A program made the position numbers and the translations under genes. A model generated the notes under the pieces. That model saw only the letters and a program-made list of their open reading frames with translations. It ran no database searches and was not told the origin of the DNA. A stretch of 64,000 nucleotides of DNA, from IMG/VR virus record IMGVR_UViG_3300049793_000366, positions 248,001 through 312,000 of that record; one strand, written 5' to 3'. Positions 1 through 60,856 of this stretch are shown here, piece after piece; position 1 is the first letter of the stretch, and the number at the start of each line of letters is the position of its first letter.

Positions 1-812
1 GATTGATGTGCCTCATCACAAGCTACTGTATGAAACTGTTTAAAGAATTCTTTTGGCCATTTCTCTAATGATTGATAGCATCCAATATAAATATTAGGAT
101 CACTAACGCCAGAATATTTACGTGGCTTATCAGACATTATCTCTTCTATCCTAAGGTCACATACTGGATATTTACTATCGTTTATTATAGCGTCTATTTT
201 AGAGTCTCTAACGGCTTGCATATTATTCTCACCATAATTGTATTCCATAATATTATCATAGAATTGTGTAACAAGTGATATAGACGGAACAATAATTAAT
301 ATTTTAGCATTTGGGTCAATCTTATGAAGTGTGTATAGAATAACAATTGATATTACTAATGATTTACCACCTGATGTAGCAACCTCAGCCATACAGTACC
401 TATTCTTCATTATCTTATAGGCAGTTTCTATCTGGTAGTCATATGGTGTGAATGACTTCCACTCATTTGTTTTCTTATCTAAAACTTTGTGATTTTTGAA
501 AAATTCAGTACAAAATTCTTGCACTGATTCGAGTGTGATATCTCTATTAAGCGGGAAGTCTTTTTTATTTTCAATGTCGAATTTAACACCTATTTCCTTA
601 GCAGCTAATAAGCATTCCTTCCATAATCCGAGATTAACCTTACCGGCATCGAAGTATGTTATATTACCATCCCACACGCCCATCTTAACAGCGGGCATGA
701 ATTTCCAACCTTTGGGTTTTCTCGTCAACCAAATATCCAACTGGTGGTACTCGATTCTTGTTGCTGACGATAAGATTAATTTTTCTTTTTCTGCATCATA
801 TCTGAATATCAT
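1..812 (-). CDS. uvsW: UvsW-like SF2 DNA helicase, N-terminal part (runs off the window start)
   Basis: Not in the ORF track; translated by hand from ATG at 812: MIFRYDAEKEK...GVWDG...PYDYQ (Q motif)...ATSGGKS (Walker A)...IIVPSISLVTQ (Ia)...CDEAHQ (Walker B). Confidence 0.9.
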   Translation of the reverse strand, partial: MIFRYDAEKEKLILSSATRIEYHQLDIWLTRKPKGWKFMPAVKMGVWDGNITYFDAGKVNLGLWKECLLAAKEIGVKFDIENKKDFPLNRDITLESVQEFCTEFFKNHKVLDKKTNEWKSFTPYDYQIETAYKIMKNRYCMAEVATSGGKSLVISIVILYTLHKIDPNAKILIIVPSISLVTQFYDNIMEYNYGENNMQAVRDSKIDAIINDSKYPVCDLRIEEIMSDKPRKYSGVSDPNIYIGCYQSLEKWPKEFFKQFHTVACDEAHQ

Positions 813-4693: not shown

Positions 4694-4725
4694 CAAAGAT
4701 AATCTAATTATTGGACTTTTCCAAA
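4694..4725 (-). promoter_or_regulatory. Bacteroidota sigma-A type early promoter TTTG-N20-TATCTTTG
   Basis: Consensus -33/-7 boxes, 20 nt spacer. Confidence 0.8.
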
Positions 4726-5988
4726 TGTTTTTTCTAATCTATTATTAAATATGGACTCAATTTCGGACTTCCACTTCTTAGGAAATACAATAGAATCGTG
4801 AATTGTAAACAACTTAACATCCGGATATTTGGTCATTATTTCTTTAATTACCTCATTGAAAATAAACTGAGACTCAGCACGTTGAAGCTCGTGAGCTAAA
4901 GTACGGTGGTTCTTATTAAGATTCTTATAAGTCTTGATGAAATCGTGGATGGTTGGGAAGACTTTATGGAATAAATTATCTTCTTTTGCTTTTCTGTGGT
5001 TAGTTCCAAAGAAAACCTTGTAAATCAGAGTTTTAACTTCTTTCTTATCTTTAATACCCAAGCAATCCATCAAATGTTGATATAATAATCCTTCGTGTGT
5101 TAAAAATTTAAATAGTTCGTATTCCCTTGAGCTTATTACTAAGTTAAGCTCGTGAGCATCAATAATTTTGGTTAGAAATAACGGTTGTGAGTTTGAAATA
5201 TCTACTTCACAAACTTCTTCACCATCTATCATAAGATGCGTCTTTCTAATATATGATTTGAGTCTGGTAAAGTTTGTATGAAATCTACCATATTCATCAA
5301 AATGATAATGTATGTGTTTTTCGTGAATACAATCTATTGCATATCGGTTACTGTTATAAACATCAATATCCCTTCTTAATTTATCAACATAGTCATCAGC
5401 TTGTTCTTTATCAATTGATATGTAGAATAAATCATTTACTAATTTCTCCTGTATATGTTTCTCAATATTAGACTCAATGGTATCGTTCTCATTAGATACA
5501 TTGATTTTATATTTCTTAAGTAATGTACTATCGTAGTTTTTAAATCGCTTGCTTGTGCCTACAAATAGCTCTGGTGATAATTCAAATGTTTTACAACGTG
5601 AGCGTTGCTTACAATAATTGTGTATTAGTTTCAATACACCACTTTGATTTAGGTATTCGAGATAGTGATTATAGTCAGTGCCATATTTTTCTCTTAGAAT
5701 TTCAGATGAAAGTCTTATGGCTAATTTCTTTTCGTAGTAATATTTGAACATCAAACCACTTGTGATGTCTATTAGATATGAAACTTTTAGTCGAACTTCT
5801 TTGTCAATCTGAGCTTTCTTTTTCCTTGAGTATATACTTCGTTTTAAGAAGACATATTTCTGTGACGAAATAGATTCAAGTTGTGGTGGTAATAATTGTA
5901 ATAAGTACTTTTTGCTTTTTAATTTATTCTTTGTGTCTAAAGCATGAGCGGATGTTTTTACTGTTGGTCTTTCAAGTTCGAGTAGCAT
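4708..5988 (-). CDS. Minimal family-A polymerase-fold protein with no exonuclease domain
   Basis: GRFHT, EVDISNSQP (motif A), KTLIYKVFFG (motif B-like), LQRAES, IHDSI (motif C); start set at ATG 5988, downstream of the promoter. Confidence 0.65.
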   Translation of the reverse strand: MLLELERPTVKTSAHALDTKNKLKSKKYLLQLLPPQLESISSQKYVFLKRSIYSRKKKAQIDKEVRLKVSYLIDITSGLMFKYYYEKKLAIRLSSEILREKYGTDYNHYLEYLNQSGVLKLIHNYCKQRSRCKTFELSPELFVGTSKRFKNYDSTLLKKYKINVSNENDTIESNIEKHIQEKLVNDLFYISIDKEQADDYVDKLRRDIDVYNSNRYAIDCIHEKHIHYHFDEYGRFHTNFTRLKSYIRKTHLMIDGEEVCEVDISNSQPLFLTKIIDAHELNLVISSREYELFKFLTHEGLLYQHLMDCLGIKDKKEVKTLIYKVFFGTNHRKAKEDNLFHKVFPTIHDFIKTYKNLNKNHRTLAHELQRAESQFIFNEVIKEIMTKYPDVKLFTIHDSIVFPKKWKSEIESIFNNRLEKTFGKVQ

Positions 5989-6058: not shown

Positions 6059-6250
6059 TTAACCTAATAAATCATCTATTTTAGAGTCACGTTTCATCAT
6101 TTTTTCAATCATTTGGTATTCCTTGATTAGTCTGGTTTCTTCCGCTGCATAGTCTATGTATTTGAAGTTTTTTAAATCTTCAATCATCTCCGGTGTCCAT
6201 ACTGCGTTGACTTTAAAGGTACCAACCATACCATTCTCATCGACACTCAT
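6059..6250 (-). CDS. Small protein: gp23-like major capsid fragment plus C-terminal R-tag
   Basis: KVNAVWTPEMIEDL...ID.AAE resembles the gp23-family KLKA.WT/S.ELAQDL...DAEAEL segment; ends KRDSKIDDLLG. Confidence 0.65.
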   Translation of the reverse strand: MSVDENGMVGTFKVNAVWTPEMIEDLKNFKYIDYAAEETRLIKEYQMIEKMMKRDSKIDDLLG

Positions 6251-7593
6251 TATTGTTGAAATCCTTTTTCTTCACCACCTAATTTATCATCTTCCATATC
6301 CTCCATACCCTCTTTTCCTGGTACGCCTTTTTTCTTCTTATCCTGTGGTGTTTGAAACTCTCTATATACATCTGGGTAAACATTATCCTCAGCATCTACA
6401 TCATATTTTATTTCGAAGAAATCCCCGAAATCAAGTAATCCTGATTTAGCAAGTGTTACTTCGGTGTGCTTTCTTAAAGATAAATCGATAATCTGTGATA
6501 TTTTATCAACGAATGCATTAAATAAACCAATTGTAGAATCGTTAAATACACCGATTGGTTTCTTTCTTTTTTTGTTGAATGAACCCAAAATAACTTTAAA
6601 TAAATATTCAATCTTAGGGTCTTCTATAAGTAAATCTTTTGTAACCTTATTCTTAATTAACTCTACGTTAATCTTGAATTTTTCCTTATCAAAGAAATCT
6701 GGAATAGAGAACTGAAATTCTAAAATATCATCCTTAGCATCTGACATATACATATTGAATAATTTTGAAATCAATGATATATAAGCGGTATCTCTTCTTG
6801 TTTCTTTTATCTTAACATCATCTACGTTTATAGATTGACAGTAATTCATAAAGTTCAATAAGATTAGAGAATATACTTCAACAAACTCAGTAGTGTTTGT
6901 ATCAGATATACGTCTGTATAATGGATTGAATATCTCGAATGATAAATCCTTGTCTTGTAATCTGATGATAATCTTCTCAGTATTTTGCTGAAAGTCATCC
7001 ATCAAGAAAGAATTCTTAGAATATGGGTTAAGTAGCTTATAGAAGAAAAACGCAAAGTTCTTTTCACCAAAAACATATTCTAAATCATCAGGAGATGTAT
7101 TTATGAAGTATTTTATAGCTTGTACTTGGTCTTGCCCTAAATTACCCTGAAATATAACTGGTAAGTGGTCTACATCAAATAAGCGAGAAAACTCAATAAG
7201 CTCATCAAGTGAGTAATCAAATTTGTTACCTTTACACATACCCGTCAACACTAAGCCATTTTTTGGCATACGCTGATATTGAATATTTGCTGGTTGATTA
7301 TCTGGGAAGTATTCGAATATGAACCACCATTTCTTTGGCATTAGTGATTTAACTCTATCATCAAATTTATTGAAATAGTCAAGAGCCGCATTATAGAAGT
7401 TCTGTAATGCTAGATCAATCTGATTAATTGGTTCTGACCCAAGAGATTTTGGTTTTATTCTGAACTGAGAGCCATCCCAGTTGACATATATTTTAGATCC
7501 TTGTACATCTTCATATACAATTATTTCATTCTCGAAAAGCTCATTTAAAAGCTGTTTATCACTATCGTGATTAAGGGTTATAAGTTTACTCAT
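6250..7593 (-). CDS. RNA-ligase (Rnl2)-like fold protein, catalytic Lys apparently absent
   Basis: YEDVQGS in place of EKxDG; FIFEYF, LPVIFQG, EKIIIR; late motif at 7622-7629. Confidence 0.45.
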   Translation of the reverse strand: MSKLITLNHDSDKQLLNELFENEIIVYEDVQGSKIYVNWDGSQFRIKPKSLGSEPINQIDLALQNFYNAALDYFNKFDDRVKSLMPKKWWFIFEYFPDNQPANIQYQRMPKNGLVLTGMCKGNKFDYSLDELIEFSRLFDVDHLPVIFQGNLGQDQVQAIKYFINTSPDDLEYVFGEKNFAFFFYKLLNPYSKNSFLMDDFQQNTEKIIIRLQDKDLSFEIFNPLYRRISDTNTTEFVEVYSLILLNFMNYCQSINVDDVKIKETRRDTAYISLISKLFNMYMSDAKDDILEFQFSIPDFFDKEKFKINVELIKNKVTKDLLIEDPKIEYLFKVILGSFNKKRKKPIGVFNDSTIGLFNAFVDKISQIIDLSLRKHTEVTLAKSGLLDFGDFFEIKYDVDAEDNVYPDVYREFQTPQDKKKKGVPGKEGMEDMEDDKLGGEEKGFQQ

Positions 7594-10648: not shown

Positions 10649-13600
10649 ATGGCATTTTTAGGTAAGTATAAGATATATCAACCAGTTGACTTTGGAACTA
10701 CAATTGATCCAAACTATGTAATACAAACATCACTTGATAGTCAAGTATTTGATGATATTACGAGTTTGGAAAATTTTGATAATGTTATTGGTAGAATCAG
10801 TGGTACGGTTGGATATTATTCTAATATACGTAATGAGATGTCTTTGCTTATTGATAACTTTGGTGGATTCTTAGACCTTAGTACTGCTGAACAAGAAATT
10901 GTTTCAAGACATTTCTTAGTTTCTAAAGCTGATAGAGATACAATACATACAAGTGATGAACAAATAGCAAACGCAAAAAGAATACAAGCATTATTAGCAA
11001 AGGAAAATGAGGATGCTGGTTATAACTATAATGCTGTTGTATATGCTGATAGTAATTTAATAGCTGATGTTACCGATTATCAATCAATTGACTATTTATA
11101 TACACCACATTTAACTGTTGGTAGTATTTCATTTGGTGCTAGCGGCCCAACTGGTGGTTCTGATTTATATGCTACAATTTCAACTAAGGTTGATACAACT
11201 GATAATAGACTACACTACCAGAATGTTCTTAAAGTTAAGAAAAATCCTGGTGTTGGTGAATATTCAAGTATTAATGCCGCTTTAGCTGCTATTACTGATA
11301 ATAGTACAACTAATAGATATAGTATTACTGTTTATCCAGGTAAATATACTGAGAGTACAATTTATACTAAGCCTTTCGTTGAGATATCGGGTATAGCTAA
11401 CTTCAACACAATAATTGAAGTTAATGATTATACTAAAGATGTTGTTGTGTTATGTCCTAATACATCATTTAATAATTTCTTATTAACGGGAGCAACAGCA
11501 ACAGGAGCAGCTGCTTTCGCGGTAACTGCTTCTTTTGGACCTGGTGCTTCTTGTGAAATTAATAACATATCATTCCTAACAGTTAATACTATTTTTAGGT
11601 CTGCTCTTAGTGTTGGTCAATTTGCAATAGTTGGATTTTTAAATTCTAATGTTTCAACGTTTTCTAATGTTAAGAAAGGTATTGATATAAGTGGTGCTGG
11701 TTATACAATATTATCGTGGGCTAACTCTAAGAACAGCGTTGTTTCAACTATTAGTGATTTTGCTGAATTGAGAGGTTCTAATAATCGATTAATATTTACT
11801 GATTTTGGTTTGATTACACAACCTGCTTTGGGTGGTACAATGTCCAATTTCGTAAGAATATATGATGGTGCTACTATTGACTTAGTTGGTGTTTCTATTG
11901 ATGGTGCTGGGACAGCACTTAATAACGAAAATACTGGTTCTGGTGTTAACATACGTGCGAATGGATTTAATATTATTAATTCATTAACGAGTGATGTTGT
12001 AATTGGTCATCCATCTACAGTTGGTAACTTACAGGGTATTGTTGATTCATCAAAAGTTACAATAGATTCTACTAATTTTAGATTATCATATTCAGAACCA
12101 ACTGGTGGTTTCGTAATTACAGGTGATTTCACACTTGGTCAATCACAAGGTACGTTGGTTGAAATGGGTGCTATCATCGAAAGAGCATTAACTATGGGTG
12201 TTTATGAAGGTGGTGATATAGCTACTGTTTCAGCAAGTGGTTTTACCGTTTCGGTTGAAGCTGGTTTTGGTTACCTATGTGATGATGGTGAAGCAGACCA
12301 TACTATTAGAAAGATTTTCTGGGATAATGATTCAATTGCGGTATCACCATATACTAGTGAGTTCTTATATTACAACTCAAGCGGTACTTTATTAAAGTCA
12401 GCAACTAGATTAGAGTCTCAACATTATATATTCTTAGGTAGAACTGTTACTGATAGTAGTTCTATTGTTTCAATCATACCATCTAAATTATATGGTATGC
12501 ATTATAGCAATGATGTTGATACATTATTGAGAGATGGTTTTGGTTCTATTTATAAGAGTGGTTCATTGGTAAGTGAAGGAACATCTGATAGAACATTAGA
12601 TGTTACAAGTGGTGTTTATTACAATACCCAATATAAATACACACCTTCTGGTGGACTTCCAATTACATTTGATGCGTTTTATAAAAATGGTAGTGGTGGA
12701 TTTACAATAAGTCGTAATCAACAAGTATTACCTAATAGTACATATGATAATGGTTCGGGTACTTTAGTAAGTGCTACTGCTGGATATTATATGAAGTTCG
12801 CACTATACGTAGTTGGTGATGGTGCCAATGAAAAATATTTCATAGTACACCCACAAGAACAACATCTTACCCAGTTAGCAGCGGAACAAGGTAGTATTCC
12901 AATTGCTCCTTCATATTTTGATGCAAGTATTACATTGATAGCGAGTATCGTTGTTCAACAAGGTAATAGTAGCATAGTTAGTATATTTGATAATAGACCA
13001 ACATTATCATTTAAGGCAGAAAGTGTAACAGCATTATCTACACATGGTAACTTAGCTGGTCTATTAGAAGATGACCATCCTCAATATTTATTAGGTAATG
13101 GTACAAGAGCAATGAGTGGTAACTTAAACTTAGGTAACAATAATATTACCAATGTTGCTAATATAAATGGTATTAGTATTGCTACACACTCAAGTAGACA
13201 TTTACCAAATGGTGCTGACCCTCTTACAACTGGTACACCATCTACGGTTGGTACATCAAATCAAGAAGGTATTGGTAATGCTTTCTCAAGACAAGACCAC
13301 GTACACGCACATGGTTTTCAGACAAATGAATTACATCATGCCTTATCAACAACAGTATCACATGGTTTCATGTCATCTGTTGATAAGTATAAACTGGACT
13401 ATATACCAGGCAGTAGTGCAAGCTATTTCTCAGAACCTTTATATGTTAATGGTTTAACGGTTTCTGTTTTTCAAGCTACATCAACTCAATCTGGATATCT
13501 ATCTACGACTGACTGGAATACATTTAATAATAAGCAATCAACATTAACATTTACGAATGGTTTAACAACATCGTCTGGTACTATATCGTTAACGACTACT

Positions 13601-16231
13601 GGTGTGTCATCTGGTAGCTATACATTCTCTAATGTGACTGTTGACCAATATGGTAGACTTACTTCTGTTTCTAATGGTAGTCAAGCTACATCAACTCAGT
13701 CTGGATATTTATCTACGACTGACTGGAATACATTTAATAATAAATTAGGTACATCACTTACTTCATCTTATATACTTGTTGGTAACGGTTCTAATGTTGC
13801 TGTTGGTGCTACTGTAAGTGGTGATGCTACATTATCAAACACTGGTGTATTGACATTAAATAGTTCTGTTGTGAATGATAGTAAAATAGCATCACATACA
13901 TCTACTAAGATTACAATTACTAATAAGAGTCAATTAAATACAAGTGTTGTATATTCTGACCAAGGAAATACATTTAGTGTTGCTAAACAATCTTTCCAAT
14001 CAGATGGTACTTATGCTCCAATTAAACTTGGTGGTTTAGCATCTGACCCATCTTCATTAGAGGCTGGTGACTTTTGGTATAACTCAGCAGATCCTTCACT
14101 TAAGTTTAGAACTGGTAGTAATACTACACGCATTGTTGTTGATACCAGATTATCACAAACATTGTATAATAAGACTCTTGAATCACCAATGATTGCTACT
14201 ATTAGTAATGGTGGTGGTAGTATATCTGTACCATCTATATCAGTAATTGATACAATGGTTCTTAGAAATACTGCGGAGACATTGACAAATAAAACGTTAA
14301 CTGGTCCAACTATATCTTATATTTATAATACCGGAACAGTAACATTACCGACATCGACTGATACATTAGTTGGTAGAAATACAACAGATACATTGACAAA
14401 CAAAACGTTAACTGGTCCGACTATATCTACTATTTATAATACCGGAACATTGACACTTCCTACCACAACAGATACGTTAGTTGGTAGAGCTACTAGTGAT
14501 GTATTAACAAATAAGACAATTAGTGCTTCTGGTAATACAATCAGTGATGCTTCAATAGCAACTGGTGATTTATTGAAATCAAACGGTTCTAAATTCGTTA
14601 GATTTGGAATGGGTTCACCTTTACAAGTATTACGTGTTAATGCTGGTGGTACTGATTTAGAATATGCTAATCCATCTGCTGGTTCCGGAACTGTTACGAG
14701 TGTTGGTATGACAACATCGGGTGTCTTATACAACGTTAATACAACAATAACAACAAGTGGTACTTTCTCACTGACCTTATTAACACAAAATGCTAATTTA
14801 ATATTTGCTGGTCCATCTACTGGTGGTGCTACTACTCCATCATTTAGGTCATTGGTTACGGCTGATATGCCATCAACTGTTGTATTAAATAATCAATCAA
14901 ATACAATAACAAACACTGCTAATACATCAGTATTATCATTGGTTAGTAGTAACGCTTCATTCACGGGTGACGCATTAACTGTAAATGTTAGTGGTAACTC
15001 TGTATCACCATATAACCTATTTAAATTAACATCTACTTTATCTGGAACAAGTACTGATAAGTTAGTTGTTAGTAAAGAGGGTATGTTGAGAGTTCATGTT
15101 GGTACTGCTTCAATGATAACGGCACCAACATATTCTATTGCTCACTTTGTATCAAACATTGGTGCGAGCGCGAGCGTAATTGTCACTGATACGTATGGTA
15201 CTATTGGTGCTGGATATATGGGTCGTAGAGCAAGAGGTACATCTGATGCTCCAACAGCAGTTCAAACAAATGACATATTGACATCATTTATTGGTAGAGG
15301 TTATGGTGCTACTAATATGAATACATCAGATGGTTATATTAGGATTGTGGCAAGTCAGAACTTTACCGACACAGCACATGGTACTTATATTTCCTTCTAC
15401 ACAACTGGTACATCCAGTATTGTTGCTTCTGAGAAAATGAGAATAGGAGATGATGGTACTATCACATTAACAACTGCTCTACCTATTACGTCTGGTGGTA
15501 CTGGTCAGATAACACCGAATGATGCATTAAATGCTTTATTCCTATCTGCTACTGCCTCTGGTACAGATACATACACAGTTACATTAACTGGTATTACATC
15601 CATAACAACTGGTACAATTATTAGAATTGGCTTTACAAATGCCAATACAAGTACTGCTACACTTAATGTTAACTCATTGGGTGCAATAGCCATTGTAAAA
15701 GAAGGTGGTATAGCATTGAGAGCATCTGACATTGGTCCTGGTTCAATACATCACTTGATGTACGATGGTGTAAGCTGGACTATTGTGGCATCAAGTATGA
15801 CTCTGAAGTCTATTGTATTCTTCTCACCATCACAGGTTACTTCTGGTACAGCATTCACGCTTACTTTAGTTTCTAATGATAGAGTTGTTAGAACTTTATC
15901 TGGGTCTAACGTAACCAACACATCATATACTGAGATTGCTTTACCAGCAGATTTCATATCGTTTCCAACAGGAGCTTATAGAGTTGATTCGAATAGGTCT
16001 GGTAACGGTACTCTTACGGTTACTATTGGTAAAGGTGGAGTAGCAGATGCTACGATGAATGCATTAAGCTTAGTTGCTACTGCTACCAACTCAACTTGGG
16101 AGACCAAAAGTGGTACACCAACTAGTTCATATACTGCTGGTGATAGATTGTTAATTACTATGACTACAACAACTTCTGGTAACACAACAACGGCTGTTGG
16201 TAACGTAATACTTCAATATTATGGTAGATAA
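10649..16231 (+). CDS. Large tail fibre / tail spike protein (1860 aa)
   Basis: YSSINAALAAI..I.VYPGKY.E beta-helix cap, DDHPQY, RQDHVH, TLTNKTL repeats, two 70-aa repeats; AATATATA at 10637-10644. Confidence 0.8.
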   Translation: MAFLGKYKIYQPVDFGTTIDPNYVIQTSLDSQVFDDITSLENFDNVIGRISGTVGYYSNIRNEMSLLIDNFGGFLDLSTAEQEIVSRHFLVSKADRDTIHTSDEQIANAKRIQALLAKENEDAGYNYNAVVYADSNLIADVTDYQSIDYLYTPHLTVGSISFGASGPTGGSDLYATISTKVDTTDNRLHYQNVLKVKKNPGVGEYSSINAALAAITDNSTTNRYSITVYPGKYTESTIYTKPFVEISGIANFNTIIEVNDYTKDVVVLCPNTSFNNFLLTGATATGAAAFAVTASFGPGASCEINNISFLTVNTIFRSALSVGQFAIVGFLNSNVSTFSNVKKGIDISGAGYTILSWANSKNSVVSTISDFAELRGSNNRLIFTDFGLITQPALGGTMSNFVRIYDGATIDLVGVSIDGAGTALNNENTGSGVNIRANGFNIINSLTSDVVIGHPSTVGNLQGIVDSSKVTIDSTNFRLSYSEPTGGFVITGDFTLGQSQGTLVEMGAIIERALTMGVYEGGDIATVSASGFTVSVEAGFGYLCDDGEADHTIRKIFWDNDSIAVSPYTSEFLYYNSSGTLLKSATRLESQHYIFLGRTVTDSSSIVSIIPSKLYGMHYSNDVDTLLRDGFGSIYKSGSLVSEGTSDRTLDVTSGVYYNTQYKYTPSGGLPITFDAFYKNGSGGFTISRNQQVLPNSTYDNGSGTLVSATAGYYMKFALYVVGDGANEKYFIVHPQEQHLTQLAAEQGSIPIAPSYFDASITLIASIVVQQGNSSIVSIFDNRPTLSFKAESVTALSTHGNLAGLLEDDHPQYLLGNGTRAMSGNLNLGNNNITNVANINGISIATHSSRHLPNGADPLTTGTPSTVGTSNQEGIGNAFSRQDHVHAHGFQTNELHHALSTTVSHGFMSSVDKYKLDYIPGSSASYFSEPLYVNGLTVSVFQATSTQSGYLSTTDWNTFNNKQSTLTFTNGLTTSSGTISLTTTGVSSGSYTFSNVTVDQYGRLTSVSNGSQATSTQSGYLSTTDWNTFNNKLGTSLTSSYILVGNGSNVAVGATVSGDATLSNTGVLTLNSSVVNDSKIASHTSTKITITNKSQLNTSVVYSDQGNTFSVAKQSFQSDGTYAPIKLGGLASDPSSLEAGDFWYNSADPSLKFRTGSNTTRIVVDTRLSQTLYNKTLESPMIATISNGGGSISVPSISVIDTMVLRNTAETLTNKTLTGPTISYIYNTGTVTLPTSTDTLVGRNTTDTLTNKTLTGPTISTIYNTGTLTLPTTTDTLVGRATSDVLTNKTISASGNTISDASIATGDLLKSNGSKFVRFGMGSPLQVLRVNAGGTDLEYANPSAGSGTVTSVGMTTSGVLYNVNTTITTSGTFSLTLLTQNANLIFAGPSTGGATTPSFRSLVTADMPSTVVLNNQSNTITNTANTSVLSLVSSNASFTGDALTVNVSGNSVSPYNLFKLTSTLSGTSTDKLVVSKEGMLRVHVGTASMITAPTYSIAHFVSNIGASASVIVTDTYGTIGAGYMGRRARGTSDAPTAVQTNDILTSFIGRGYGATNMNTSDGYIRIVASQNFTDTAHGTYISFYTTGTSSIVASEKMRIGDDGTITLTTALPITSGGTGQITPNDALNALFLSATASGTDTYTVTLTGITSITTGTIIRIGFTNANTSTATLNVNSLGAIAIVKEGGIALRASDIGPGSIHHLMYDGVSWTIVASSMTLKSIVFFSPSQVTSGTAFTLTLVSNDRVVRTLSGSNVTNTSYTEIALPADFISFPTGAYRVDSNRSGNGTLTVTIGKGGVADATMNALSLVATATNSTWETKSGTPTSSYTAGDRLLITMTTTTSGNTTTAVGNVILQYYGR
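13471..13745 (+). repeat. Two further copies of the 210-bp repeat unit
   Basis: TCAAGCTACATCAACTCA..CTGGATAT at 13471 and 13681. Confidence 0.85.
14270..14520 (+). repeat. 111-bp (37-aa) TLTNKTLTGPTI coding repeat
   Basis: ATTGACAAAyAAAACGTTAACTGGTCC at 14281 and 14392, plus a degenerate third copy. Confidence 0.8.
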
Positions 16232-26855: not shown

Positions 26856-28301
26856 TTATAGTCCACCGAATATATCCATAATCACGGTCAATCTTGATGT
26901 TATCTCAGGCATACCTAATGGATCAATAATTGAATTGATAGGTGATAAGATACATTTAAAAAATTGTGTGTCGTAATCAATTTCTGGAGCATACTCTACT
27001 GGATGCGATCCTCTTATGTATGCGAATACGTTATTGTCACCCTTACAATAGTAATATTTAATCTTAGTACCAGATTTGATAAATGTGTATTTATCTTGAT
27101 ACTTTTGATTCTTATATAGTAAGTGATTATATAACGCCGCTGCTTTTACTGCAAAGTGCGCTCCACTCACGAATTCTAGTTTCTCTTTATCATCAAGAAC
27201 TTTCTCGTTGTAGTTAGAACATGATGACTGCATTGCTATCTCATCGATATCTGCTAATTCAAATTCTTTACGTAAGCCTTTTACTAACTTTAATAATTCT
27301 TTGATGTTGAATGATTCTGGATTTGTAAATAAATATTTTACAATATCTACAATCTTCTCCCTTGCGAAAGCTGGTGTTGATGAACGTACAAGCTCTACAC
27401 CTTTTGGATATAAGTACTTGAAACGTTCGTGTGGAATACCATCCTCCCAAGATACGTGTTGTATGTATTTCTTCTTAGCGATGTTTATAATAGACTCTGA
27501 TACACGCTCTAACTCGAAATCTTCCTTATTGTCTACACCGAATGAACCAGCGTATTCTTCTAATGAATCTCTAAAGAATTGTGCTATTCTGAATTTATCA
27601 ACAGCGTGTACAAAATCTAACTCTCTGAAAAAGTTAGGGATAATCTTAGTAGTAACATCTTTTAAATCCTTACTACCAACAAAGTAGCCATCAATAACTA
27701 ATGTTTCTATATTATTATCAGCTATAACATTTTTAATGTTTTTTAAGCCACCTATACCAAAGTTATCATACTCTGCTATGTAACCAATGAAACTTGGATT
27801 ATCAATTTCAATATCAATTTCATTTCTAAGTAATATTGCAAATGGTTTATCGATAGTTGATAAGAACTCATCATTGATTACTTGATTTTTCCAATCACAT
27901 CTTTTTATAGCTGGACCAAATCCAACAAACACTGAGTCGGTATCAGCGTAGATACTAACTTCTAAATCGCCTGGTTTTTCTGGGTCTATTGGTGTTAATG
28001 GTTTTACATTTTTAATATAAAGCATATTATGTAAATCAGTATCAAGATGCCATTGATTCCACCAATAATCTTGAGTTTTCTTAGACATGGTTTTAGTTAA
28101 ATCACGTCCTTGTGCTGTTATCGTACCAGCTACTTGGTTATTGAATAATATGAAGTGTTGATTAGCGAAGGCTCCATATGAACCATTTAGTACGAGTTTA
28201 AGAGCTAATTGCAAGGCATTATAATAATCCACTTCTTTTTTAAGTGTATTAGCCTTGTTTTTAAGTTCTTCTATTTTATTTATCTTTTCCGTCCTTGTCA
28301 T
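26856..28301 (-). CDS. Family B DNA polymerase, C-terminal subunit (split gp43B-like)
   Basis: KLVLNGSYG (motif B), YADTDS (motif C), AKKKY, KGVE..RSSTP; no exonuclease or motif A. Confidence 0.9.
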   Translation of the reverse strand: MTRTEKINKIEELKNKANTLKKEVDYYNALQLALKLVLNGSYGAFANQHFILFNNQVAGTITAQGRDLTKTMSKKTQDYWWNQWHLDTDLHNMLYIKNVKPLTPIDPEKPGDLEVSIYADTDSVFVGFGPAIKRCDWKNQVINDEFLSTIDKPFAILLRNEIDIEIDNPSFIGYIAEYDNFGIGGLKNIKNVIADNNIETLVIDGYFVGSKDLKDVTTKIIPNFFRELDFVHAVDKFRIAQFFRDSLEEYAGSFGVDNKEDFELERVSESIINIAKKKYIQHVSWEDGIPHERFKYLYPKGVELVRSSTPAFAREKIVDIVKYLFTNPESFNIKELLKLVKGLRKEFELADIDEIAMQSSCSNYNEKVLDDKEKLEFVSGAHFAVKAAALYNHLLYKNQKYQDKYTFIKSGTKIKYYYCKGDNNVFAYIRGSHPVEYAPEIDYDTQFFKCILSPINSIIDPLGMPEITSRLTVIMDIFGGL

Positions 28302-28341: not shown

Positions 28342-29292
28342 TTATGATACTAATTTTTCCAAATTATTTATCCGCTTCCATTCTTTAGTTCCCATAAATA
28401 TTAGCTCATATTCTTGTAGAAAAGCTGCATAACTACCCATAACTTTTATGGCATCTTCTGCCCATTTGGAATCTCTGTTTGGTACTAAGTGATATGGAAT
28501 CCATTGTTTGACGTATATGTTTTTATCATCATAAACAAGGTCTTTGAAATGATTCTCACCATTAGGAGTACCGAGTATTGTTATCTTAGTGTTTTTTCGC
28601 GCTATTGCTGTTAGTTGATATACTTGACTGAATCTTCTTACAGCAGTAGGTGATAAGTGACCATAACCATCTACAATAGTAAAATCATAAGTCATACCCA
28701 AAGTTGAACCAGCACTGCCGTAGAATGTTCCTATTTTAATACATGAGCCATTATCGAATACTATTCTACTATTTGACATACTGAGTATACCAAGTTTAGC
28801 ATAGTAAGGTAAATTCTCATATAGAATTTTAATTTTTTCTAAAATTCTTTTAGCACCATCTATTTTATTATCCGTTATAAGTATTTTCTTATCATCCTGA
28901 TATGCATAGTGTAAAGCTTGTAATGCCAATATCAATGTCATTCCACTTTGTCTGGAATTGATTATAGTGTTAAACCTATTTGATTTGTAATTTTGTAAGG
29001 CTTGTGCTTGATATGGACGAAGTGAGACTGATGCGTAGCCTAAGTTACCAGTTAATGTTTTTGTAAGAGATAATAAATACTCAGGATCATCTTGTATTTT
29101 AAGTTTAGATGCTATTTCTTCTTCTGTGTAGTCGAATATAATACCAGATGCGCGATGTGCCTCATTTCTCCTATAATATGGTTGTGTGCGTGGGTATTCT
29201 GGTTCAATACCTAATAAACCTCCTAATTTCTTATCTCGGTTCTTTTGTTTCTCACTTCTACATTCTAATAATTCTGTTGACCAATTACTCAT
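28342..29292 (-). CDS. Degenerate terminase large-subunit ATPase domain (gp17-like) with R-tags at both ends
   Basis: LRPYQ, SRQSGMT (K>M), IVDGY (DE>DG), GTPNGENHF, FLQEYEL; no nuclease domain. Confidence 0.8.
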   Translation of the reverse strand: MSNWSTELLECRSEKQKNRDKKLGGLLGIEPEYPRTQPYYRRNEAHRASGIIFDYTEEEIASKLKIQDDPEYLLSLTKTLTGNLGYASVSLRPYQAQALQNYKSNRFNTIINSRQSGMTLILALQALHYAYQDDKKILITDNKIDGAKRILEKIKILYENLPYYAKLGILSMSNSRIVFDNGSCIKIGTFYGSAGSTLGMTYDFTIVDGYGHLSPTAVRRFSQVYQLTAIARKNTKITILGTPNGENHFKDLVYDDKNIYVKQWIPYHLVPNRDSKWAEDAIKVMGSYAAFLQEYELIFMGTKEWKRINNLEKLVS

Positions 29293-32685: not shown

Positions 32686-33849
32686 ATGGCTATTAGAACA
32701 CGCAGAAATTTCAACGAAAGAAAACCTTTCAATAAGCAAGAACTGTTTAAGTTCATTGATAAATTTGAAATCGAAATGGATGGTGATTTGCTTATCACTA
32801 AGTTTGACGGACGTATTGTTAAGTCTGTTAGTGTTTCAAATAGATATGAAATATTTGATTTCCGTAGTTACTTAAAAGATAAGATTGCTCTTATCTCTGA
32901 GAATTTCGAAATCACTGAGTACAGTCACTACTTCACTGGTGGTATTCAAGAAATTCGTTTGTTCTCTGATAAAGTTACAATCGGTGAAGACGTTTATGAG
33001 AAGTGTTTCTACTTCCTTAACTCAACCGATAAGACAAGAGTTCTTAACATGAACCTTGGTTTTTACAACCGCACGAAAGATGTGTATTTCGCATTCTCTA
33101 AGTCAGAGTTCTCTCTTCGTAAGAAACACTTAACGGGTGTTACTGAAGCTGCTAACAGTTTGACTATCAAGTTTTCTGAGCAACCATTTGATGAAGAGAT
33201 TAAAGCGATGAAATCTCTTTTGAATCACTCAGTTAAGCTTTCTAAAATTCAAGAAATTCTTGTACAAACAGAACGCGAGTCTGACACAAATTCATCAGGG
33301 CATTTACGTTTCGATGCTTTCAAAACAGCACTTGAAAGACGTATGCGTACAAACAAAAATGAGCAAAACATTTTACGCACAAGTTCTGAGAGTTTAGAAA
33401 AGAAATACAGTGGTAAAGACGGTGATAGATATGACTTCTACGTAGATGCTTATGATACATTCGTTATCTATACAAGCTTATTCGCTTACCGTGACTCATA
33501 TACCATCGCAAAAGAAACTGAACGCATTTTGAACATCACACAACAGATGATTCGTAATACAAAGCTTGATGCTTTATTCTCTTTACTTGATGAAAAGCTT
33601 GACCCATCTGAAATCGTTAAGACTAAGAGAGAAAACAGAAGTGTAGAAGAATTCGATGGATTCAAAGTGGGTGATAAAGTAACTTGGATGTTGCGTTCAG
33701 CTAAAACCAAGATGCGCGGTAAGATTACAAACCTACGAGCATATAAAGGTGATACAAGCAAGATGATTGCTAAAATCAAAACAAAGGATGCTACTTATGA
33801 AGCATACGTATCTAAATTAGTAAAAGAAGAATCGAAAGTAGTAGCATAA
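32686..33849 (+). CDS. DUF932-like protein with internal R-tag and C-terminal KOW/SH3-like domain
   Basis: FLNSTDKT...LGFY..RKKH; IRNTKLDALF; FKVGDKVTW. Confidence 0.5.
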   Translation: MAIRTRRNFNERKPFNKQELFKFIDKFEIEMDGDLLITKFDGRIVKSVSVSNRYEIFDFRSYLKDKIALISENFEITEYSHYFTGGIQEIRLFSDKVTIGEDVYEKCFYFLNSTDKTRVLNMNLGFYNRTKDVYFAFSKSEFSLRKKHLTGVTEAANSLTIKFSEQPFDEEIKAMKSLLNHSVKLSKIQEILVQTERESDTNSSGHLRFDAFKTALERRMRTNKNEQNILRTSSESLEKKYSGKDGDRYDFYVDAYDTFVIYTSLFAYRDSYTIAKETERILNITQQMIRNTKLDALFSLLDEKLDPSEIVKTKRENRSVEEFDGFKVGDKVTWMLRSAKTKMRGKITNLRAYKGDTSKMIAKIKTKDATYEAYVSKLVKEESKVVA

Positions 33850-45661: not shown

Positions 45662-46434
45662 AAGATGTTTATGTACTCGGTGACATACATTGTAACTTTG
45701 CAGTTATAGCAAACTGGATTATACAAAATCAAATAACAAACACCATACTTATACAGGTTGGTGATTTTGGTATTGGGTTTTCAAATCTACAAGCAGATGT
45801 TATGAAGAAGCTTGATGATTTGCTTGCTAGTACGAATAATATATTATATGTTATCAGAGGCAACCACGACAATCCATCGTGCTTTGTTTATTCTACTAAC
45901 GTGGTAATATCATTATATGATAGAAATGGTGAAGTAGATTGTAGTGACTTAGAACAAGTCATACGTAATCTTAAACAGATACATTTATTACCAGATTACA
46001 CAGTTCTTGATATCAATGATGAGAAGTGGTTGTTTATTGGTGGTGCTATTTCAATTGATAGAAAGGTAAGAGTGCTTGGTACATCTTATTGGATTGATGA
46101 AAAGTTTATATACGATGAAGAGAAAGTATCTACGTTTGAAAATATAGATAGAGTAATAACACATTCATCACCGGACTTTTGTCCACCAGTTAAACTTACA
46201 CCAATTGTTTATTCTTTCGCGAAGCACGATGGTTCATTGATATCAGAGCTATTATATGAGAGAAAACAATTCACAGCAATGTTTTCTAAGCTACAAGAGA
46301 AAAACAAAATAAAGAGTTGGTACTTCGGTCACTTTCATCAGCATTCACATATCTATCACGGTGTAACTGAGTTTATTGGTTTAGATATAGATGAATTCAA
46401 ACAAGTATTATCTAAGGACGACTATGTACATTAA
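45658..46434 (+). CDS. Calcineurin-like metallophosphoesterase
   Basis: GDIH, GDFG, RGNHD, THS, GHFH. Confidence 0.9.
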   Translation: MKDVYVLGDIHCNFAVIANWIIQNQITNTILIQVGDFGIGFSNLQADVMKKLDDLLASTNNILYVIRGNHDNPSCFVYSTNVVISLYDRNGEVDCSDLEQVIRNLKQIHLLPDYTVLDINDEKWLFIGGAISIDRKVRVLGTSYWIDEKFIYDEEKVSTFENIDRVITHSSPDFCPPVKLTPIVYSFAKHDGSLISELLYERKQFTAMFSKLQEKNKIKSWYFGHFHQHSHIYHGVTEFIGLDIDEFKQVLSKDDYVH

Positions 46435-46744
46435 AGGCAACGCTACATGGAAGTGTAAAATTACAATGTCTTCATCACCAAGAATGGAGAATGCAATATG
46501 GAAACAAGATTTTATAAAAGATAAATGGTACGATGTAGAATATGAGATTCATTCAAATCCTGAAACAGCGAGAATAAATGGTGGTTACAGAAAGATATGG
46601 GTGGTTAATGAGTCTGGTAAAAGAGTTGAGTTTGGTTCTACGCACATTAGGATTATGTTCCATAACGAATACAACAAAACTGATATGAGGGAAAGTCAAA
46701 TTGATAATATTTTAAACGACGATGGACACAGCGAGAATACTTAA
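46424..46744 (+). CDS. Hypothetical protein with C-terminal R-tag (MRESQIDNIL)
   Basis: ORF; motif. Confidence 0.65.
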   Translation: MYIKGNATWKCKITMSSSPRMENAIWKQDFIKDKWYDVEYEIHSNPETARINGGYRKIWVVNESGKRVEFGSTHIRIMFHNEYNKTDMRESQIDNILNDDGHSENT

Positions 46745-47792
46745 ACAATTAAAGCTTGAAATACCTGATGATAGCATAAGACAAACATATCTTATGATGT
46801 TACTATCAAAATCATCCGGTAGTGATTCATTTAAAGGTGTTACTGATTCAGTATTGTTATCAATGGAAGATATGTTCAAAGATAAAGATGGTATATTCAA
46901 TGATATGTATAATGATATACTAAGAGAAAAGCAATCACGTAGAAATAATAAGTTAGAAAGTCTAAATTTAAAGAGTATGAAAAGATTTGAATTCAACGCA
47001 AACAATATGGTTGATGCTTCTCATTATATTTATAACCGAGCTATTCAGTTATTGAAATATGGTGTTAAACTAAAGTCTATGGACGAAGTTGGCTTCGGTG
47101 TTGATGCTACATTCATCTATAATGGTGAAGAATATCATGGTATATACATACTCGAAGAATTCAGAGGTAAAAAGCTCTATGATTCTTATGTCAAAACAAA
47201 TGACTATAAAGTAATCACACATATCGATTGTCAGATAGAAGATTATTTGAAGAAACATAATATTGAATATGTTTGTTTAGGTGAATTTGAACAAACACCG
47301 GAGTATAAATGGATGCAAAGTATTTATGGTGATGATAGAGCTAAACGTTCTGATGTTTACTTTATGAATCATGTAGATGAAGGTCTTGCTGTATTAGAAT
47401 GGATTGGTGCCTCTGATGTTGCGAAAAGAGCATATACTCTTCATCCTATTTTTCAATCTGATGAAGACTTGAAGAATAATTACAATGCTGATTATAAGGA
47501 TATAGATGCTAAAGTAATTGTTGCTTCAATGGAATATCGTTCTGTTGCTAATGAATATTTATCAACCAGAAGCATCAATGATATATCAGAGATTAGACTA
47601 TCACCATTGAAAGATGTGAATGATATGTTAATTGCTGATAAGGTTCAGAATTACAAAGACTTCGAACAATATCACATGGGTAAACACATTCGTTCTATTG
47701 AATTGAATGAATATTTTATCAATTGGTTAATGAAATTAGGCGTAAGAATGAATTACGAAAAATGGAAAAGAGACTTACAAATAAAATTCTAA
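46722..47792 (+). CDS. Fusion of an R-tagged 85-aa module, a GNAT-like segment and a SpoT/Mesh1-like HD-fold domain
   Basis: RRNNKLESL; IYILEEFRGKKL; RAKRS..YFMNH, AYTLHP, LIADKVQN. Confidence 0.55.
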   Translation: MDTARILKQLKLEIPDDSIRQTYLMMLLSKSSGSDSFKGVTDSVLLSMEDMFKDKDGIFNDMYNDILREKQSRRNNKLESLNLKSMKRFEFNANNMVDASHYIYNRAIQLLKYGVKLKSMDEVGFGVDATFIYNGEEYHGIYILEEFRGKKLYDSYVKTNDYKVITHIDCQIEDYLKKHNIEYVCLGEFEQTPEYKWMQSIYGDDRAKRSDVYFMNHVDEGLAVLEWIGASDVAKRAYTLHPIFQSDEDLKNNYNADYKDIDAKVIVASMEYRSVANEYLSTRSINDISEIRLSPLKDVNDMLIADKVQNYKDFEQYHMGKHIRSIELNEYFINWLMKLGVRMNYEKWKRDLQIKF

Positions 47793-51130: not shown

Positions 51131-54100
51131 TTATTCTGGTATTATGAAAACTGCTATCTCTATTTCTACATCTATTGGATTGAAACCACCACCACTTCCT
51201 GGTGCTGATACTATCGAGTCAGTACTTAATACGACATTATCAATGAATGAGAAGTTCTGGTTAGTATAATCAATATATGGAGCTACCGCAGTGTATGGTA
51301 TCTGTAAACCATAGTTAATATTAGATGCTGTCGCATTCGTATATTTATAGAACGGTATCATGTCTACCTCATAGAACTTTAGATTATCTAATACAGCAGA
51401 GAAAGATCCACCGATGTACATATCCATATCAACTCTATTATAGAAATATTCCATTTTTTTCATTGTTGGATCTGGATTACTTCTCACTGGATTATGCTGA
51501 TACATATACGCACCATCTATATCAGCATTGAAGTATAAATTTTCCAATGGACCTATTGGTATTACAACTTCAAATCCTAATATTATAATGGTTATAAATT
51601 CAACTCTATTACCATACATATCACCACCATATATTCCAGCAGTACCAGACCAAGTATAACTATCAAACTCAACCATTGTGTATCTACCAATTTCTAAACT
51701 ATCCAATATAGAATCATGTGTTAGTATTGCTAAGTTACTCTCATCAGTTGAGAAAGATACTCCTTTTGGTTTTGTATTATTTGGATATCCATCCATTATG
51801 AATAATGCTGGTTCGCTAATACCATCCACTAACGATGGATTAGTTACATCTTGATATAATGCCTTACTAAGAGTACCATAAACATTAGATACTGTCCAAC
51901 CATACGTGTAGATGTTTGGTCTGTTGAATTTGGAAGCTCTATCAATAAAATCGACATATGTATTATACTTATAACCTAAATTATAATCTCTAAATGTGAG
52001 TGAATTACTATCACGCATATTAGATACTGATTCTAAAATATCACTTGTAATTAAACCTTGATAGTTTGTTCTAGTATATTCATTACCACTATCATCTAAT
52101 ATAATTTGGTCAAAGAAAATATTAGATACATACTTAGTATCATAATTGATATCCATCCAAGAATTATATAAATGTGTTGTTGATGTTGTAGCAACGTCCA
52201 TATCTTTGAACTTCATCTTCTGAATAACAGATGTAGAAACAGTTCCAGTTTGAGTAGCTATAAATCTACCACCTTCGAAGCTACCATCTATCCAGTGTGT
52301 CTTATCCATCACTGTTAAGAAAGGGAATCCAGCAAATAACCCTGAATTCCAAATACCAGTAAACTTACCATTTAAGAAAGCACCTGATAACCAAATATTC
52401 TTACTGACATGAATTTTATGACTCTCTGAATCTTTAACAATTTCATGTATAGGGAAATTAACCATTGCTTCAACAGTTAAACTTCTCGATGTTGGATTAG
52501 AAACAATTGTATAGTAACCTCTTATTAGTTTTCTTCTCTCATTAATATCATGTGATGTGACGTTACTAATAGAAACAACATCACCAGCAGTTAAACCACC
52601 GAATGTTGCACCAGTAACAGTAAATTGCCATCTACTGCGTGTTATTTGAATACAGCGAGTAACATCATCTAATTCAATATATGATGATGCAGTAGCGTAT
52701 TGTACACCGCCTATTATGCTTGTAGTATCAACTCTCCATCCATTATTCCAAACACCATTTTCCCAAACACCACCTAAGAATCGGCCATTACCAGCTTTTG
52801 TTCTGATACCTTTACCACTAACTGTTGCTGAGTATGTCCAGCTACCATAGCTTGGTAATGGACCAACTGTACCTACAATTGAACCAGAACCATAAACGAT
52901 TGGTGTGTTCAATATGGTATTATTCAGTGTACTATATGTGCCTGTTGTGTTGAACGCATTCCATAAGTGTAAATTGGTATTTGTTGCCGAAGTATCAATT
53001 TTTACGTAGTTTAATATTTGATGCGCTCTTAATAATAACTCAGTTGTTTCTTTTGAGTATGTTCCAATATTTCCACTGCCGTTTGATACGCTACCAACTA
53101 TATAGTCAGAGCCATACCAGTTACCATTTTTCCATGTACCATCTTTCCACACTATATTCCTTGCGAAACCATACCACCAAACACCATCTTTCCAGAAAGC
53201 ACCAGACATTGTACCATTTTTCCATAAACCATTCTCCCAACATGAATATGCGAATTCACCATCATTCCATATACCGTTATTCCAGTAACAAGATTGTGTA
53301 CCATATTCAAATGTACTCATTGTAGCATTGTTAGCTTTATATGAGTAACCATCAGAACCTAAGTATGTATCTACACGATAGTCAGTTCTTGACAACGGTG
53401 TTGGTAGTAAACCACCCGCTGTACCGTAAATATAATTTAAACTCAATGGGCGAAGAACAAACGGATTGAAATAACCATTTGTCCATGTACCATTCTTCCA
53501 AACACCATTCATCCACATAGAGTTAGTGAACTCAGCATTAGAGTGGTCTACTGTACCATTTATCCATTTGACATTTTCGAATAAAACTTTGTTGTTATTC
53601 TTAACTTCATCCTTACGTCTAATTAATGTTGTGAATAATTTCTTATCCTTATTTAATTTTCTTGTATCATCGATTACAGTTCCATTTACCCAAAGACCTC
53701 TGAAAGAAGCAGTAGGATTCAAGAAGAAGTTATTGAATTGTGTCTTACCAGCAACAGCAGAAAAAGTAGCTGCGTTACTTGTAAATGTACCTTTCATAAA
53801 TACACCATTCTTCCAAACTTTACCTTGAAATCTACCATCGTTAAATGAACCATCAGCCCAAGATGAATCAAATACACCATTGTTGAAATTACCATTATGC
53901 CAGTTAGTAATAAAGTTATGTCGAACTTCATCAAATGGTGCATATGTTAATTCACCTTGTGTAATAATCTGTGCGTGGTCGAAGCTATAGCCATCGGCTC
54001 CGAAGTAACCATTATTGAAGTTACCATTCATCCAGAACGCGGCATTTCCTTGAAAATAACCACCATTAAAGTTACCGTTTTTCCAAACAGCGAAATTCTT

Positions 54101-59375: not shown

Positions 59376-59891
59376 ATGGTAATAAAATTATCCCCTGCTA
59401 AATTAGAGTTTGTTTTGAATAAAGCAATTGCTCACTTTGAGGCTGGTAGTTCGATTAAGATAGATACCCCAATTTATAGTGATACTGAGTACAAATTCAG
59501 TGGTGAAGAAACGATTGATATGCCACTAAAACCAAATGAAACAGGTTATGTAGCCGGTACTTCTAAAACAAAGAGGAAGCAATTTCATTTCAGTTATTGT
59601 ATATCCATAAAGGATAATAAGTTAACCAGAATCAGAGTGAATAGTGATGGTGACATAACATATGTATTCGATGGTACTGAGAGTAAGAAGTTAACATCTG
59701 ATTTTATTAAGCGTTTCTTTCTCAAGATATATGAAATTGAGAATGCTGAATTTAAAAAGGTTTACGCATCCTATGACGATACAGAAGAGCGAAATGAAAA
59801 ATTATCGGAATTACTTGGTAGCACAGAAGGAGAAGAAAAGAAAGAAATTATAAACAATAAAGAAGTCGCCAAGAAGAAATGGTGGCAATAA
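59376..59891 (+). CDS. Hypothetical protein with near-C-terminal R-tag (ERNEKLSELL)
   Basis: ORF; motif. Confidence 0.7.
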   Translation: MVIKLSPAKLEFVLNKAIAHFEAGSSIKIDTPIYSDTEYKFSGEETIDMPLKPNETGYVAGTSKTKRKQFHFSYCISIKDNKLTRIRVNSDGDITYVFDGTESKKLTSDFIKRFFLKIYEIENAEFKKVYASYDDTEERNEKLSELLGSTEGEEKKEIINNKEVAKKKWWQ

Positions 59892-59898
59892 AAAGAAA

Positions 59899-60441
59899 AT
59901 GAAATATATTATATTAGACCTTGAAGCAACCTGTTGGGAGCAAAAAGGACACGGAAACAAAAACGAAATCATCGAAATTGGTGCATTATGTATCAACGAT
60001 GATGGTAAGATTGAGAGTGAGTTCTCTGAATTCATTAAACCAACATTAAACCCTATTTTATCAGACTTCTGTAAGAGTTTGACCAGCATCAAGCAAGAAG
60101 ATGTTGATTATGCTGATAAATTCGATAAAGTGATTGAACGCTTTAAGAGTTGGATTGGTGATAATGACTATGTGTTATGTAGTTGGGGATTTTATGATAA
60201 GACTCAGTTCGAATCAGACTGTAACATACATAAATTAGATACTAAGTGGTTGAGGAATCATATTAGTCTGAAACATCAATACACGGGCATTAAGGGTCTT
60301 AAAAAGCATATTGGGATGTCTGGTGCGTTAGCCTTAGAAAAGCTTATGCTTGAAGGTACACATCACAGAGGTATTGATGATGCCAGAAATATTGCTAAGA
60401 TATTCGTTAAACAATTTAATAATTGGAAATTCAATGTGTGA
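59899..60441 (+). CDS. DEDDh 3'-5' exonuclease (ERI1/KapD-like)
   Basis: LDLEATC, EIIEIG, SWG.YD, HHRGIDDA. Confidence 0.9.
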   Translation: MKYIILDLEATCWEQKGHGNKNEIIEIGALCINDDGKIESEFSEFIKPTLNPILSDFCKSLTSIKQEDVDYADKFDKVIERFKSWIGDNDYVLCSWGFYDKTQFESDCNIHKLDTKWLRNHISLKHQYTGIKGLKKHIGMSGALALEKLMLEGTHHRGIDDARNIAKIFVKQFNNWKFNV

Positions 60442-60856
60442 TTATAGAGTTTTATTAGTTAATGACAAAGAAGAATGCTTTGTTATTGATAAGGGTTTAA
60501 AATTCTTCTCCAAAGAAGAACCTAAAGATAAAAACTCATTTGTTTGGTATTCACCAACCACTAAGGTTTTTAACCTTACAATCAGAGTTAGAATGAATGC
60601 TGATTGTCAAAATTGGTTGAGTATAAACAATACTGAATTAAGTGTTTATGTTTATAATAAAGAAAGTAAGAAATGGTTAGGTTATGCTGAGACCACTCTT
60701 AAAAGAAGGGGTTTATCTAAGACAACTGAATGGACAATAGAAGATGTGATGCTGAAGTATAAAAGTGAAGTTAGTATGACATCCGATTTAATTGAAAGCT
60801 TGGATTCATTCACTAAACAAGTATTGCGAGATTCGACTTTAAATGAACTATTATAG
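60434..60856 (+). CDS. Hypothetical protein with C-terminal R-tag (LRDSTLNELL)
   Basis: Start adjusted to ATG 60434. Confidence 0.7.
   Translation: MCDYRVLLVNDKEECFVIDKGLKFFSKEEPKDKNSFVWYSPTTKVFNLTIRVRMNADCQNWLSINNTELSVYVYNKESKKWLGYAETTLKRRGLSKTTEWTIEDVMLKYKSEVSMTSDLIESLDSFTKQVLRDSTLNELL

Follow-up and report, generated by a model that had tools for sequence, protein, structure and literature searches.

A precedent for protein-docking motifs inside inserted catalytic-domain loops comes from phage T4 DNA ligase, which binds the sliding clamp gp45 through an LDFLF motif (PMC6212786). This motif forms an amphipathic alpha helix in a flexible and dispensable 26-residue loop inserted in the NTase domain and absent from homologues; the peptide binds with a Kd of about 10.7 uM. 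Other T4 proteins (gp43, gp33, and gp55) carry the same type of motif at their C-termini; in the T4 record, gp43 ends in SLDFLFG and gp55 in SLDFLYEAND. More broadly, PIP-box and PIP-like motifs of PCNA partners (Q-x-x-h-x-x-a-a) are degenerate short linear motifs found at C-termini, N-termini, or internal disordered segments, often with flanking basic residues, that plug a hydrophobic pocket of a ring-shaped hub, and helicases such as Pif1 (PDB 6e49) and Srs2 (PDB 3v62) use this route. A different use of short tags on many unrelated proteins is found in C-terminal degrons (ssrA-type LAA and others) read by Clp proteases. Here, we describe a short tag carried by about a sixth of the proteins of a huge phage, a copy of which also sits in an inserted loop of the phage's UvsW helicase.

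The DNA stretch we analyzed (hereafter the window; 64,000 nucleotides, G000:C1:248001-312000) is part of G000, a single virus record of 507,910 bp and 33% GC, whose nearest record in the phage collection searched is an unannotated 634,780-bp uncultured phage (LR745206.1). Gene content is T4-like and includes UvsW, a split family-B polymerase, primase, a gp46-like SbcC, a gp44 clamp loader, and a gp55-like late sigma factor. The ORF at window 3..812 (-) contains the first 270 codons of the UvsW-type SF2 helicase and runs off the left edge of the window; the full gene (G000:C1:247196-248812 (-)) encodes 538 aa. The protein matches T4 UvsW (2oca) by phmmer over residues 21-510 (E 1.4e-44), Pfam DEAD, ResIII, and Helicase_C, and phrog_16, although Pfam UvsW_N alone falls below its cut-off (19.9 against 25.3 bits). 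A Foldseek search with its AlphaFold2 model (mean pLDDT 92.8) returned 2oca as the top hit (E 6.5e-30), as well as 1rif (TMt 0.80). Motif I (ATSGGKS, about residues 144-150), motif Ia (IIVPSISLVTQ, about 172-183), and DEAH (266-269) are read directly in the sequence.

An earlier note had pointed out that the helicase, just after motif Ia, contains a segment almost identical to one in a nearby 63-aa ORF, and we confirmed this observation. Window 183-209 (-) encodes RDSKIDAII, residues R202-I210 of UvsW, while the 63-aa ORF at window 6059-6250 (-), which has no Pfam or PHROG match, ends in KRDSKIDDLLG (motif at nt 6065-6091). Six residues are identical and three are conservative. The arginine codons differ (AGA in UvsW, CGT in the 63-aa ORF), so this is not a recent DNA copy. 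Two large proteins of 447 and 426 aa flank the 63-aa ORF (window 6250-7593 (-) and 4708-5988 (-)); neither has a family match, but both are conserved in the related records G001 and G002 (61-62% and 42-44% identity) and in G009, a record from a more distant clade. The window also contains two very large ORFs of 1860 and 2131 aa (10649-16231 (+) and 51131-57526 (-)), the second of which has distant relatives in G001, G002, G009, and G014.

C-termini across the phage genome share the consensus K-x-x-x-R-[DEN]-x-[KQ]-[IL]-[NDE]-x-[LI]-[LIF], in which we number the arginine as position 0. Using a position matrix built from 116 seed tags, we found that 125 of 775 crude ORFs carry the tag at or near their C-terminus, compared to 0 in shuffled proteins. 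The tag ends 0-12 residues before the stop, most often 1: it ends one residue before the stop in the 63-aa ORF (score 24.3), exactly at the stop in a 159-aa ORF (window 60377..60856 (+); ...RDSTLNELL, score 23.8), and 9 residues before the stop in a 117-aa ORF (window 46391..46744 (+); ...RESQIDNILNDDGHSENT, score 23.0). Tagged proteins are small (median 104 aa) and cluster at 425-508 kb and 0-25 kb. With the tag removed, 130 of 139 tagged proteins have no BLAST relative among the others, indicating that the tag sits on about 130 unrelated protein bodies. Nearly all are ORFans: Pfam and PHROG searches with about 30 tagged or internally tagged proteins gave almost nothing, the exceptions being a weak ribosomal L7/L12 C-terminal-domain match (PF00542, E 1.3e-6) in a 217-aa protein with a strong C-terminal tag (G000:C1:426700-427353 (+), score 18.1), DUF6011, and a TerL-like ATPase.

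Because the tags lie at gene ends in tightly packed arrays, we considered whether the conserved element might be a DNA or RNA signal such as a promoter, terminator, or coupling site, with the peptide as a by-product. This possibility is effectively refuted. Arginine is encoded by AGA, CGT, CGC, CGA, AGG, or CGG in genome-wide proportions, Leu and Ile codons likewise follow genome-wide usage, hydrophobic positions interchange L, I, F, V, and M, third codon positions carry little information, and nothing is conserved past the stop. Furthermore, an in-frame copy is conserved inside UvsW. The tag is thus conserved as peptide rather than as DNA.

The tag is not confined to C-termini. Above a matrix score of 14, the proteome has 12 sites located more than 14 residues from the stop, compared to 1.05 in shuffled proteins and 0 in reversed proteins, and four of these lie within the first 35 residues. 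Among the 83 ORFs of the window, there are 19 C-terminal and 5 internal sites. In addition to UvsW (score 17.3), these include an internal tag 24 residues before the stop of a 171-aa ORF (window 59376..59891 (+); R139, nt 59790-59816; score 17.7), an internal tag in a 387-aa ORF (window 32686..33849 (+); R290, nt 33553-33579; score 16.5), and an internal tag-like site in a 356-aa ORF whose C-terminal half matches phrog_21276 (window 46722..47792 (+); R74, nt 46941-46967; score 15.6). A 316-aa TerL-ATPase-like protein (window 28342..29292 (-); phrog_5989 and PF03237) is tagged at both ends, near the N-terminus (R19, nt 29212-29238; score 17.2) and at the C-terminus (R307, nt 28348-28374; score 15.8). 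This is a stand-alone paralogue and not the true terminase, which lies at G000:74253-76424; it shows 31% identity to the true TerL and 31% identity to TerL of G001. G002 has the same paralogue with an internal tag.

We next asked whether the UvsW segment is an insertion, as the earlier note had proposed. In the alignment to T4 UvsW, residues about 199-225 face gaps, and 38 of 43 diverse homologues have no counterpart to the segment. In 80 viral loci fetched with ±10-kb flanks, the distance from Walker A to DExH is 120-129 aa in most loci at 57% identity or above (range 110 to 162, with deletions and a larger insertion), 104-109 aa in loci at 43-49% identity, and 95-98 aa in T4-like loci at 35-39% identity. 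The tag therefore lies in a lineage-specific insertion of 15-25 residues between motif Ia and the next strand, which T4 UvsW and every homologue at or below about 50% identity lack. The inserted loop (window 150..236 (-), about residues 193-221) follows the helix after motif Ia in RecA-like domain 1 and is modeled as two short helices (195-202 and 206-210) and a coil (211-221) before strand 222-225, with a pLDDT of 70-80. Surface exposure of this segment is inferred from its being an insertion, its variable length, and the local dip in model confidence. The condition under which the earlier note would have abandoned its reading, alignment to a buried core helix shared with tag-less phages, did not hold. 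One sublineage (L057:3746-5470 and L058:10001-11725, two of the relatives' loci) has a further insertion of about 60 residues at the same site, with a Walker A to DExH distance of 162 aa, but it contains only a partial tag-like string, RNKELDKF.

The tag's key positions are retained in most of 120 UvsW homologues at 61-86% identity. Position 0 is R in 108, position 1 is D/E/N in 117, position 3 is K in 74, position 4 is I/L/V in 107, position 5 is D/E in 106, position 7 is I/L/V in 117, and position 8 is L/I/V in 83. By contrast, positions 2, 6, and 10-14 and the upstream linker (0 or 6 extra residues) vary freely, which is the pattern of a short linear motif on a loop. A minority of homologues (P0155, P0169, P0223, P0247, and a group with the string FRDPNLE..IQ) have lost the motif or the whole loop. 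We considered whether the segment could be an amphipathic helix that packs on the helicase and only resembles the tag by coincidence, since the model shows short helices here and amphipathic helices are common in AT-rich proteomes. This appears very unlikely: about 0.001 hits scoring 17.3 are expected in a 538-aa protein, the polar tag positions (R0, D/E1, K3, and D/E5) are conserved as well as the hydrophobic ones, and the insertion exists only in a tag-bearing lineage. We are thus confident that RDSKIDAII is an internal, selected copy of the tag in an inserted loop.

Tags and the UvsW insertion co-occur at the level of clades but do not track each other strictly. Whole-record scans identified significant C-terminal tags in G001 (21 of 468 ORFs) and G002 (9 of 260), both from the same clade as G000, and in G009 (15 of 578), from a clade at 46% identity. 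The UvsW loop motif scores 22.8 in G001 but has decayed in G002, and G009 has no insertion. G009 (330 kb, 24% GC) is unusual in that 441 of its 578 ORFs are 200 aa or shorter, which may mean another genetic code, and its tags have a K-rich variant consensus (R-K/N-x-K-L-K/N-K-L-L). No tags were found in the flanks of 44 T4-like loci. Within the clade, loci whose UvsW motif scores high have 17 tags in about 200 flanking ORFs, compared to 6 in about 162 for loci whose motif scores low, which is only a trend. In 140 kb of the 142-kb fragment G005, the helicase keeps the loop but not the motif and the only hit in 172 ORFs is a polymerase tail (see below), although this fragment is 56% complete and may sample a tag-poor core region. 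These data indicate that the tag system is older and wider than the UvsW insertion, which arose inside a tag-bearing lineage, and that the UvsW copy is an optional, lineage-specific addition.

The earlier note had interpreted the internal copy as evidence for a binding motif rather than a free-carboxylate degron, and our data support this reading. Nonetheless, the phage encodes ClpP (G000:C1:189407-190066 (-), E 1.2e-68) and a 709-aa two-ring ClpC-like ATPase (G000:C1:442219-444348 (+)) that lacks the N-domain and has a short UVR-like middle segment and a VGF loop. ClpP lies next to UvsW in several relatives (loci L003-L005 and L043), and tags are concentrated on small proteins in early-gene-like arrays. 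The tag might thus be read by the phage's own unfoldase and ClpP, or by a host AAA+ protease, possibly through an adaptor, giving timed turnover of early proteins and control of UvsW levels. We consider this unlikely, as tags at N-termini, in internal loops, and up to 12 residues from the stop suggest that no free carboxylate is needed, and a degron inside a folded domain of a late-acting repair helicase is awkward. The ClpC-like gene, which G001 also encodes together with ClpP, is present in the records G014 and G018, where we found no tags in the parts scanned (the first 60 kb of G014 and the UvsW flanks of G018), and was not found in tag-bearing G002, which is 90% complete; most of these records are fragments.

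The evidence instead points, with moderate confidence, to a portable amphipathic docking helix of roughly 13 residues, resembling LxxLL or PIP motifs, which in UvsW rides on a flexible surface loop where it can be presented without disturbing the ATPase core. We infer that this loop recruits UvsW to the same partner that reads the C-terminal tags. The tag core, [IL]-[DN]-x-[LI]-[LIF], has the h-D-x-h-h spacing of the T4 clamp motif, with hydrophobic residues at i, i+3, and i+4 and an acidic residue at i+1. It differs from LDFLF in that the middle aromatic residue is replaced by a polar residue, an arginine (fixed in the seed set) lies four residues upstream, lysines are found at -4 and +3, and about 125 proteins carry the motif, against a handful in T4. 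The I4, L7, and L8 positions of the tag likewise match the h4, a7, a8 spacing of PIP boxes, but there is no glutamine and there are no aromatic residues, and the likely conformation is an alpha helix rather than a 3-10 turn.

We looked for a sliding clamp. Searches with PF09116, PF02916, PF00712, phrog_223, and T4 gp45 (phmmer) detected none in this genome or in 14 relatives. An hhalign screen of 59 ORF families singled out a 263-aa protein encoded 2.9 kb right of the window end (P0336; G000:C1:314862-315653 (+); L198:2862-3650) with a probability of 64.6% (next best 1.9%), but this fell to 8.6% with deeper alignments, and only a fold search settled the question: its AlphaFold2 model (pLDDT 90.3) matches PCNA and T4 gp45 (3u61_F, 6drt_A) at E about 1e-10, and the Pif1 and Srs2 structures mentioned above were also among the hits. 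A 114-aa gene with one of the best tags (score 22.6) overlaps the stop codon of this clamp gene, and the clamp loader is a gp44 homologue (phrog_168, 8e-56). In G001, G002, and G005, the clamp orthologue lies next to the polymerase. Some relatives' contigs also encode a translation initiation factor IF3 homologue (IF3_N and IF3_C) near the polymerase and helicase region (L003:1-534 and L044:15059-15562).

The family-B DNA polymerase of this phage is split into an exonuclease part (G000:C1:102467-103699 (+)) and a polymerase part (window 26856-28301 (-); PF00136 and phrog_262) encoded about 170 kb apart. The polymerase part ends in ...SRLTVIMDIFGGL, and this tail (R-L-[ST]-V-h-x-[DS]-[IL]-F) is conserved in six related genomes. 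It shares R0, h4, h7, and h8 with the tag, a skeleton with a chance rate of 0.0038 per protein that is matched by only 3 of 133 large proteins, but it lacks the polar positions and scores just 3.8 on the full tag matrix. Furthermore, the gp55-like protein and the ligase fragment carry no tag. A complex prediction of the clamp trimer with the 63-aa tagged protein gave no answer (score 0.00, partner pLDDT about 36) and counts neither for nor against binding. A clamp-binding motif on 16% of a proteome would have no precedent, and the tagged ORFans show no sign of DNA-related function. The spacing of the tag core, the polymerase tail, and the T4 ligase precedent make the phage's own PCNA/gp45-fold clamp our most likely partner, but only tentatively; UvsW would then be tethered to clamps left on replicating or recombining phage DNA.

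Alternatively, the hub could be an unidentified phage or host protein, or a localization or assembly platform, to which UvsW and the TerL-like ATPase would be brought together with about 125 small proteins. The very large number of tagged ORFans, their concentration in small-gene arrays, and the low matrix score of the polymerase tail fit this scenario, as would the state of G005 if a dedicated hub had been lost while the clamp and the polymerase tail persisted. However, we identified no candidate for such a hub, the caveat regarding G005 applies, and the tag core has the spacing of the T4 clamp motif, and the polymerase tail shares the skeleton of the tag; we regard this alternative as possible but less likely than the clamp. 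At its most far-reaching, and doubtfully, the tag could constitute a proteome-wide addressing system that tethers more than 120 unrelated proteins, UvsW, and the TerL-like ATPase to a single hub, most plausibly the clamp, such that clamps loaded on phage DNA would act as a large tool-belt marking "self" DNA for a sixth of the proteome. Full-text literature searches yielded no description of this tag or of a UvsW-clamp contact, and the scale of the tag system appears to be undescribed.

The internal UvsW copy is the most informative instance of the tag, as it supports the view that the motif works without a free C-terminus and indicates that selection keeps it on a core DNA-repair enzyme across most of 120 related sequences. 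It thereby turns an anonymous C-terminal signature on about 125 ORFans into a candidate protein-protein docking system with one named client. If the partner is the clamp, UvsW would join T4 ligase as a second case of a clamp motif evolved inside a catalytic-domain loop, and huge phages would have the largest known viral set of clamp clients. If the partner is something else, the tag points to an undescribed organizing hub in huge phages.
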